Below are positions 18,071-21,000 of a stretch of DNA of 64,000 nucleotides, piece by piece. Each line of letters starts with the position of its first letter. The first letter of the stretch is position 1. The stretch is from Dimorphilus gyrociliatus (taxonomy: Eukaryota > Animalia > Annelida), in the NCBI GenBank assembly GCA_904063045.1, contig CAJFCJ010000020.1, forward strand, positions 488,916 through 552,915, written 5' to 3'. The position numbers and the translations under genes were made by a program. A model generated the notes under the pieces. The model ran no database searches, was not told where the DNA came from, and was given only the letters and a program-made list of their open reading frames with translations.

Positions 18071-21000
18071 GGTGGTAGTGGTAGTAGCATTTCGAAAGCG
18101 AATCACGTGATGCGATGAAAAGCACAGTACAAGACCTGTTATTCGAATCTGTAGAAAGAAACGGGCGGGTCGACCAGTCTCACTCCGGGTGGTCGGCAAT
18201 GTAAACAGGCGAAAAACACTTTCGTCAACCGTCCGGCAAATACTGTGGGAGAAAGTGCGAGTTTTTATCGAGACTCTTTTATTTCCCCCAGGGGTAATTG
18301 GCATTTTGAAGCTGGCTCACGCATGCCGGGACGCAATCAGTGCATTCGGCCTATATATATATTTAAATACTTAGATATATATTTTGATACAGCTGTAGGT
18401 GTATGACTATATATATTTATATATACATATATATCTTACTAGTAGTTTTATAACTAAATAAGTATTAATATCTAAATATACTGAAAGAGTATATATAAAC
18501 CTGAAACATTTATTATTGACGCAAAAAACACTCAGTCACGCTCGCGTCGTTTTCGCTTATCAATCGGTCACGGCGTCTTGCACGTATTACTTATGCATAT
18601 TTTAACGGCGTATTGAGGTACTTGAGAGTTGTCACGTGACTATGTAAATCACATGACATTGAAGGTCACGTGAGCGGCGGCGGTAAATCGTTGTTTTAGG
18701 TATCTAGAGGCGGTTTCCGCTGCGACTTTTATCACGTGAACTCTGTATTTTATCAGAAGGAAAAGGGAGGGGTCGAGGAGAAAAAATTTCCTCGCTACCC
18801 CCATCGATTACTCCCGAAGCGTAATTAAACGCTGCGTAAAATGATAGACGACTCGTTGGAAATTCGCCGGCGGCGAGAGGCGAAATGTTATTTAGGCGAT
18901 CTCCCGGGATCAGTCTCGGCTCTGCTTATCGCCGTCCCGTTTGGTCACGCATAAATGACACGTTAGACGGGTAACGCTAGACGACAACACACGGCTTCGT
19001 TCGAATCTAATGCGTATGACGATCGAGGGACGTGACGTCCAAGAGATACGTTAATCCGAGATGTTGATGAGTTTCACCGCCCTCATCTTCTATTCTATCT
19101 TTTTCTTTTTTTTTACCAACAGACCGAAATCGCCAAGAGATTAAATGCGATTTGCGCGCAAGTCATACCATTCTTATCACAAGAGCATCAGCAGCAAGTA
19201 GCAGCGGCTGTGGAGAGGGCTAAGCAGGTCACTATGCAAGAATTAAACGCCATTATTGGGGTAAGTTGTTTCTTTATTATTACTCTATTCTTTTTTCCCC
19301 GACTATATATAGCCTTAATCATATATATACAAGCTAATATCGATTAATTGCTAATGTCGCCCTTCGCGCGCTTTATTCGATTATCGGTTGTTGCGCTAAT
19401 CCACTCAATCTTCGTATTATAAATGTATAGGTGCGGTTGCGTACAATGTCTTGTATTACACAGAAAAATTACAACTATATTTCACTCAATGTCAATGTGT
19501 GTATCAATTGAGTTCAAAGTCTATAATTTAAGGCATCTCTCCATTCATTAAAAACCTATCAAACTGATAATTAATGTTCGTTTAATGTATATAAGTAGAC
19601 ATCTTTCTTCTTCTTGGCTTAATAACAAATTAAACGGGATAAAATGAAGAAGAAAGAATATTAACTTAAAATTTTGACGTAGTTTCTTTCTCTCAGCAAC
19701 AAATGCAAGCACAACATGCAGCCACCCATGGTGCGGCACCGCACGTTCCTTTAGGACCCCCGGGTGTTAGTACGGCTTCGGCATTACTCGGCCTATTGCC
19801 CGGAGCCCACTTACCCCCAGGATTGAAACCTGAATTGCCAAACTCCGGTGCAGCTCCGGCCGCAAATTCTGCAGCTAGCTCCGCATCGGCGGATAAAGGT
19901 GAAAAGAGAAAAAAATAATAATGACAAGATGGCGGCTTTAACGCGTTTTTAACGACCATGTTCTTTCACATGCTTGATAATTCATAGACAATTTTATATA
20001 AAAAAAATTAAATTAAATACATATATATATATTAACAGTTTATTTATAATATATATGTATATATATATATGTATGTGTATATACACCTTAATGCGAATTT
20101 GTATATATACCTTAGTATCAAAATTGAATACGTGTATAAAAAAAAACAAAATATGTATGTACATACATATATATATATATATATATGTAAATTATTATTT
20201 ACTGATTTTATATATATATCTATGTATTTATGTATTTTTGCTTTTTTTTATACATAAGTGTATCTAAAATACCTAATATACAAATAATTTTTACATACAT
20301 ATTTTATATCCCGGTCGTATTGTTTCTGTTTTTTTTTATTGCATGCCCGGATTTATCCTGCTTCTTACCTTCAATTTACTTTTTCTTTTCATACACAAAT
20401 TTTATTGGTTTTTACTTTTGGTTTCCGCGTGATTGGATTTTTTTCGCTTTTTCTTTATAGAACATGGTTCCACCGATGCCACCGCCAGGACAGGCCGGTC
20501 CTGTTACTAGTATGCCGCAAGCGGCTGCAGCTGCTGTTGCAGCTGCCCGGGCCGGCTTAGTTGCCAGTTCATCTGCTGGAGCTACCTCTCTCGCTACTGC
20601 CATCCCGAATGGTTATTGGGGAGGATTAGGATATCCCGCCGGGGCTATTAAAGATGAAAAAGGTAGGAATAACAAAGGCAAAGGCTGCGTCAACTTATAT
20701 TTTTTTGCATCTCCTCCTATTTCTCTTTTCTTATTCGTCATGTCTATTTAATATAGTATATATACATATATACATATAAATTTATACAGTATATATGTAT
20801 ATATATATATATTTTATAAAACACGTTCAATTATTCATGATTTTGTCATGAATGGGGCGGTTTTATACTCATAAATAGATATACATAAATATATAGATAT
20901 ATATGCAATCATATGTACAAAACGTATATATATTGTATATATAGTGTTTGTTTTTTTAACTTTTCCCGCCTATTTTTCACCTTATTTAACCTGTGATATT

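Follow-up and report, generated by a model that had tools for sequence, protein, structure and literature searches.

Groucho/TLE proteins are central co-repressors in the Wnt, Notch, and segmentation pathways. In Drosophila Gro and in vertebrate TLE1-4, the regions of the protein follow one another in the order Q, GP, CcN, SP, and WD40. Two GP versions of differing sequence exist in vertebrates, one in the long TLE proteins and one in AES/TLE5. The GP regions of the long TLE proteins bind histone deacetylases (HDACs), whereas the diverged GP region of AES/GRG5 does not (PMC2997355; PMC2701438). These vertebrate versions are encoded by separate genes.

Frame-enforced pairs of mutually exclusive exons are an already known kind of system. 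The two exons of such a pair are adjacent, share the same phases, and have the same length that is not a multiple of three; inclusion or omission of both exons breaks the reading frame, and the resulting mRNA is subject to decay. Paralogy of the two exons through tandem duplication is usual for mutually exclusive exon pairs, although not obligatory.

Here, we describe a groucho/TLE co-repressor gene from a tiny marine annelid, Dimorphilus gyrociliatus. The gene occupies approximately 16.45-26.12 kb of the + strand of the window (the whole 64-kb stretch of DNA analyzed). While the order of its regions is that of Drosophila Gro and vertebrate TLE1-4, its GP region, unlike theirs, is coded by two alternative, frame-incompatible exons, which we call A and B. 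This pair resembles the known frame-enforced pairs in phases, length, and adjacency, and in that the frame is lost if both exons are in or both are out. It differs from them in that A and B are not recognizably paralogous and in that, of the two, only B was seen in spliced RNA. A full-text literature search turned up no description of mutually exclusive exons in the GP region of groucho.

Results

The assignment of the gene to groucho/TLE, made in the original prediction from the sequence, is borne out by Pfam matches to TLE_N (model positions 1-24 on 16548-16676 and positions 62-107 on 19123-19260, the latter with E = 1e-21) and to WD40 models (on 23520-24551 and on the final exons). Across the WD part, identity to TLE/Groucho proteins of many animals reaches 80-89%. 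The last Q-domain exon (19123..19260, + strand; TEIAKRL...ELNAIIG), which carries the longer TLE_N match, is identical to gastropod sequences at 46 of 46 residues and ends in phase 0 at the donor ATT GGG|GTAAGT. Downstream of the GP region, the + strand holds a micro exon of 20 nt (21289..21308; (G)VMEERH, phase 1 to 0), a CcN-domain exon (22259..22375), and an SP-domain exon (22564..22835; ESDGDKSD...), the loose end of which at 22835 runs on into a WD exon starting at 23705. An element rich in GGTGGCGGCGGCGGCG recurs both within the gene and farther upstream (12014-12066 and ~18030-18075).

Exon A (19697..19898, + strand) and exon B (20461..20662, + strand) are each exactly 202 nt long, starting in phase 0 and ending in phase 1; translation of the sequence reproduced the coordinates given earlier. 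Both have canonical splice sites, with pyrimidine-rich acceptors and GT donors: ...TTTCTTTCTCTCAG|CAA and AAG|GTGAAA in A, and ...CTTTTTCTTTATAG|AAC and AAG|GTAGGA in B. Each is open in frame 0 only, with stops in both other frames, and the GC content of 0.57-0.59 in A and B stands against 0.22-0.31 in the adjoining introns. Open windows of 67 codons make up only 4.3% of such windows in the introns of this gene. Either exon, ending in ...SASADK|G (A) or ...GAIKDEK|G (B), can be joined in frame to the micro exon (...K|GVMEERH), as had been predicted. The frameshift predicted for A joined to B is also real: B is then read in frame 2, where translation would stop after 17 codons. If A and B are both skipped, the junction of the Q exon with the micro exon is likewise out of frame. 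As 202 nt cannot be divided into whole codons, an mRNA has to contain either A or B to be productive, never both and never neither.

Apart from their length, their phases, and the ...K|G end, A and B have no features in common. BLASTP returns no alignment between them, and a shuffle test gives z = −0.9, in agreement with their earlier description as almost unrelated. Given this lack of detectable similarity, an origin of the pair by exon duplication cannot be shown. The QQMQAQH start of A is the start found in most bilaterian Groucho/TLE proteins, and the AIKDEK end of B, as suggested before, resembles that of vertebrate TLE (AIKDDK or PIKDEK among the protein matches). Searches of solved structures with A and with B gave no match, Rfam returned nothing relevant at the locus, and a scan of JGI metagenomes with exon A found no relative. 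The candidate internal donor in A, GGT|GTTAGT (cut at 19765/19766, phase 0; 19766..19771, + strand), exists in the sequence and lies within codons G-V-S of the conserved frame.

To describe splicing at the locus, we compared assembled contigs of four runs (X1, X4, X8, and X9) over 19050-22900. The runs that contain this stretch are mostly coral metatranscriptomes, and D. gyrociliatus or close relatives evidently occur in coral samples. Spliced contigs from two different studies, one of 473 nt in X1 (depth ~500) and one of 2,442 nt in X9 (depth 18), include the Q exon and confirm the predicted joints 19260>20461 and 20662>21289, that is, the path from the Q exon through B to the micro exon. Both continue through 21308>22259 and 22375>22564, skipping exon A entirely. 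X1 has joints on both sides of the micro exon, and in the X9 contig its letters sit between B and the CcN exon. B, the GP exon of all spliced RNA seen, is thus the dominant path in the sampled X1 and X9 runs, and the isoform seen in RNA does not have the QQMQAQH start that most Groucho/TLE relatives keep. X4 and X8 contain only unspliced contigs of a relative.

Exon A has a depth of 0 in X1 and X9, with no contig in either run, even though the depth of the gene in X1 is ~500. The joints 19260>19697 and 19898>21289 expected of an A path, the joint 19765>20461 expected of a form in which the first part of A precedes B, and the A+B joint 19898>20461 were all absent from the contigs of the four runs. 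Since rare variants are lost from contigs and some records are filtered out, the missing A is weak evidence either way, and dominance of B in the sampled contigs does not imply that A is never used. Among proteins, A is present only as a genomic open reading frame of 74 amino acids over exon A (P0001, from Logan contigs), which shares a 90% cluster with the public gene model DgyrCDS12362, and in that model itself (P0129), in which the gene is split. The protein collection returned no transcript-derived fragment of A, and a word search with P0129 returned mollusc GP sequences and no RNA-derived Dimorphilus fragment of either isoform; as the known fragments joining Q to B were missed as well, the absence of A there carries no weight. 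Of the mutually exclusive use proposed originally, the frame logic and the occurrence of B alone in two runs stand, while a transcript with A alone was found neither in the contigs nor among the proteins. The case for such use is therefore built on frame logic and conservation and not on observed A transcripts.

The coral metatranscriptomes SRR23372216, SRR23372228, and SRR23372229 contain long contigs, all unspliced (Logan contigs L001-L003 and L005-L006), from a Dimorphilus-like worm that is ~89% identical to the reference over the whole gene, and X1 represents a third lineage that is ~97.5% identical in exon B; Dimorphilus-like worms seem to be common in coral samples. The intron that separates the micro exon from the CcN exon (21309-22258) is retained in an X1 contig at a depth of 60, versus ~470-500 for the spliced form. 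This intron is richer in GC (0.43) and has 93.5% identity between lineages, versus 80-88% elsewhere.

The genomic locus of DgyrCDS12362 (L007), in the D. gyrociliatus assembly GCA_904063045.1, is 100% identical to the window over 21 kb (8841-29918). The public annotation cuts groucho into two coding sequences exactly at A/B (window positions 18841-26120, equivalent to positions 10001-17280 of L007). DgyrCDS12362, of 150 amino acids, combines an odd first exon with the Q exon and with A, which is extended past its donor until a stop is reached. The second model, of 657 amino acids, begins at the ATG at 20464, inside exon B. Upstream Q-domain exons (~16548-17950) are in neither model. The annotation was built from Augustus predictions, Capitella and Helobdella protein alignments, and PASA transcripts (PMC7854359). 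With evidence of such mixed origin, the presence of A in a gene model is no proof of a transcript, and it may be owed to protein alignment or ab initio prediction instead of cDNA.

To evaluate constraint on A, we used the relative represented by Logan contigs L001-L003 and L005-L006, which is ~11% diverged and covers the whole gene; the comparison of exon A uses L001-L003. None of the first 69 nt of A differ from the relative. The remaining 133 nt contain seven changes, of which five are synonymous (third position) and two are conservative amino acid replacements (L>I and A>G). There are no indels in either part, in contrast to the flanking introns, which are 80-88% identical and contain indels. 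Exon B, also without indels, has 14 changes, 13 of them synonymous. For positions 19766-19897, pN/pS is 0.15 (Nei-Gojobori; Fisher’s test, P = 0.0185), and a neutral simulation with the intron substitution spectrum gives P = 0.025. The corresponding pN/pS ratios in the constitutive exons of the gene are 0.12 in SP, 0.09 in CcN, 0.03 in B, and 0.02 in WD1. If A is read in either of the other two frames, all seven changes become nonsynonymous. Coding conservation is thus present in 19766-19898, the part of A in which the original prediction had held that its lack would speak against the proposed switch.

Synonymous divergence in A is 0.09, versus 0.21-0.25 in B, SP, and WD1; low synonymous divergence is usual for regulated exons. 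Both splice sites of A are intact in both lineages. Conservation of the sequences flanking A is not clearly above that of the sequences flanking constitutive exons. Taken over seven substitutions and one species pair, these results are supportive, rather than conclusive, of A being a coding sequence under purifying selection over its full length, 19766-19898 included.

We also compared the two exons with the GP regions of molluscs. Mollusc proteins found with P0129 have the form NAIIG|QQMQAQHLPHAHAPPIP...LK(G)EDK. In Aplysia californica and Sinanodonta woodiana, the GP region is a single exon that runs from phase 0 to phase 1, starts with QQMQAQH, and is followed by a micro exon. It is like Dimorphilus A in its position after NAIIG, its phases, its QQMQAQH start, its ...K|G end, and the presence of a micro exon next to it. 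The original prediction suggested a check for the two-exon arrangement in other spiralian groucho genes; these two loci show only one such exon, and no second copy of the GP exon was found within 10 kb downstream in Sinanodonta; it is Dimorphilus that differs, by an extra exon B that is used by default. A tblastn search with A finds the GP exons of both molluscs (E = 2e−4), while the search with B did not find the mollusc GP exon. Shuffle tests of A against the mollusc exons give z values of 4.7-6.4. For B, the z values are 3.6-4.3 against Sinanodonta and a JGI sequence, with the signal coming from the second half and the ...IKDEK end. Given the mollusc layout, the tblastn matches, and the shuffle tests, A is orthologous, in position and in sequence, to the one GP exon of ancestral spiralians. 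B, in the same size class, is an additional exon, which may be a diverged duplicate or have another origin.

In the gene model of the snail Candidula unifasciata, the Q exon is followed only by a short GLQPP...LKEDK exon, and its 8-kb intron yielded no exon with QQMQAQH; an apparent AAPHVP match there proved spurious. An exhaustive protein search with the SP exon, in a library clustered at 50% identity, gave six matches, which included snail and JGI sequences and no annelid. A word search with the WD exon yielded mostly partial bilaterian proteins and no close relative with a GP region.

Several sequence elements in the introns were considered as possible selectors of the exons. The 64 kb contain three copies of the motif ATGGCGGC (context, CAAnATGGCGGC), where 0.38 would be expected. 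The ~89% identical relative conserves each of the three sites (19929-19936 on the + strand, 21069-21076 on the − strand, and 21873-21880 on the + strand), all of which lie in groucho introns around A, B, and the micro exon. They are unrelated to the GGTGGCGGCGGCGGCG-rich element. One of them falls in an intronic block of 35 nt just 3′ of exon A (19920..19954, + strand; TGACAAGATGGCGGCTTTAACGCGTTTTTAACGA) that is identical in the relative. As RNA, the sites at 19929 and 21069 are complementary (−29.6 kcal/mol), and their pairing would loop out exon B. This energy is no outlier among 40-nt intron windows (mean −24.9, standard deviation 5.2), which led us to reject RNA pairing as a demonstrated exon selector and to record the ATGGCGGC duplex only as a lead. 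It is just as possible that the motif is bound by a protein as DNA. Inverted (AT)n repeats around B were also discarded as a pairing candidate, because they reflect the self-complementarity of microsatellites. The strongest RNA duplex in the region forms between 19841-19880 in A and 20521-20560 in B (−42.4 kcal/mol). Since it arises from palindromic alanine codons (GCAGCUGC), this duplex is probably incidental.

Discussion

The explanation that we tentatively prefer, although it falls a little short of being probable, is that B is the default GP exon and that A is a conserved coding exon that replaces B in some stage, sex, or tissue outside the sampled RNA. A, as the mollusc comparison shows, corresponds to the ancestral spiralian GP exon, and B is an added exon of equal size class. 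Default use of B in the sampled RNA yields a Groucho protein with a GP region from which the conserved QQMQAQH start is missing, and selection keeps A protein-coding. A would most likely be spliced instead of B, between the Q exon and the micro exon, in a stage, sex, or cell type that the sampled runs do not represent, and the resulting protein would have a GP region of the ancestral type. The lengths of the introns also contribute to this explanation: those around A and B measure 436-950 nt, far above the genome median of 66 bp, and long introns in this genome often contain regulatory DNA (PMC7854359). With both exons at 202 nt, the two isoforms would be of equal size on a gel and easily missed.

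Other fates of A would fit parts of the same evidence. A poison or regulatory exon would be included only together with B; the frameshift, with its stop 17 codons into B, would lead to decay of the transcript, and A would tune groucho output without ever encoding protein. The premature stop of A+B, the high nucleotide conservation of A (69/69 at its start) with its low synonymous divergence, and the lack of A mRNA in the assembled contigs, as expected if it is degraded, all suit such an exon. However, a nontranslated exon would not show the codon pattern of A, in which five of the seven changes are synonymous in frame 0 and none of the seven in the other frames (P ~ 0.02, with only seven changes), and the 19898>20461 joint was not seen in the contigs, which makes this role of A unlikely. 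Alternatively, the ancestral A could have been functionally replaced by B and be a relic that is no longer spliced and has not yet decayed in close lineages, which would agree with B alone being seen in RNA and with B being the exon in use even though it is A that is orthologous to the one GP exon of molluscs. We consider a relic improbable, given that A evolves about one-fourth as fast as its flanking introns and without indels, that its changes are distributed as expected under purifying selection on the protein frame, and that its splice sites are intact in both lineages.

It is also conceivable that only a part of A is used, or that A ends a transcript. In the former case, 19697-19765 (69 nt, in frame) would act as a cassette spliced through GGT|GTTAGT to B, giving QQMQAQH...PPG followed by B. 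The donor is present and in phase, the 69 nt are 100% conserved in the relative, and the second part of the mollusc GP exon fits B better than it fits the rest of A (global z of 4.4-5.2 versus 0.2-2.1). The donor is weak, though, with T at −1 and +3; the joint 19765>20461, which the original prediction had listed as a third form, occurs in none of the four runs; the constraint in 19766-19897 is of the coding type, which is unexpected of an intron; and the tblastn alignment of A extends well beyond residue 23 of the mollusc exon. Such a cassette is accordingly quite unlikely. In the latter case, the donor of A would be read through to the stop at 19916-19918 and the transcript would end in the intron between A and B, producing a short, AES-like Groucho of Q and GP only. 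DgyrCDS12362 ends in exactly this way, ATTAAA occurs at 20007 and 20012, and short Q+GP isoforms of long TLE genes have been reported in vertebrates (PMC2997355). We nevertheless assign little credence to a terminal exon, which is weakened by the lack of conservation of both the read-through tail (GENRNKNNN* in the relative, with indels) and the ATTAAA signals, whereas the donor GT is conserved. In addition, the runs examined show neither a contig end nor poly(A) there, and the first exon of DgyrCDS12362 is implausible, coming from a pipeline that also took ab initio predictions and protein alignments.

Returning to replacement of B by A, it is possible, though less likely than not, that a single groucho gene produces two co-repressors through a regulated either/or choice in the GP region, with A as the ancestral version and B as a lineage-specific default without QQMQAQH. 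Such a choice would be the splicing counterpart of the vertebrate split between TLE, which binds HDACs, and AES, which does not, and the conserved ATGGCGGC sites in the introns, which can pair across B, might guide it. As in vertebrates, there would be two GP versions that differ in sequence, but the putative Dimorphilus versions, recognized here at the level of sequence, would come from the exon choice of one gene instead of from separate genes. We conjecture that the switch might swap the HDAC-recruiting module of the protein, as the original prediction proposed. The GP region is the one reported to recruit histone deacetylases, and differing GP regions, those of TLE and AES, act differently (PMC2997355; PMC2701438). 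If the proposed choice is true, a single-copy invertebrate gene could switch its repressive module while its partners remain unchanged.
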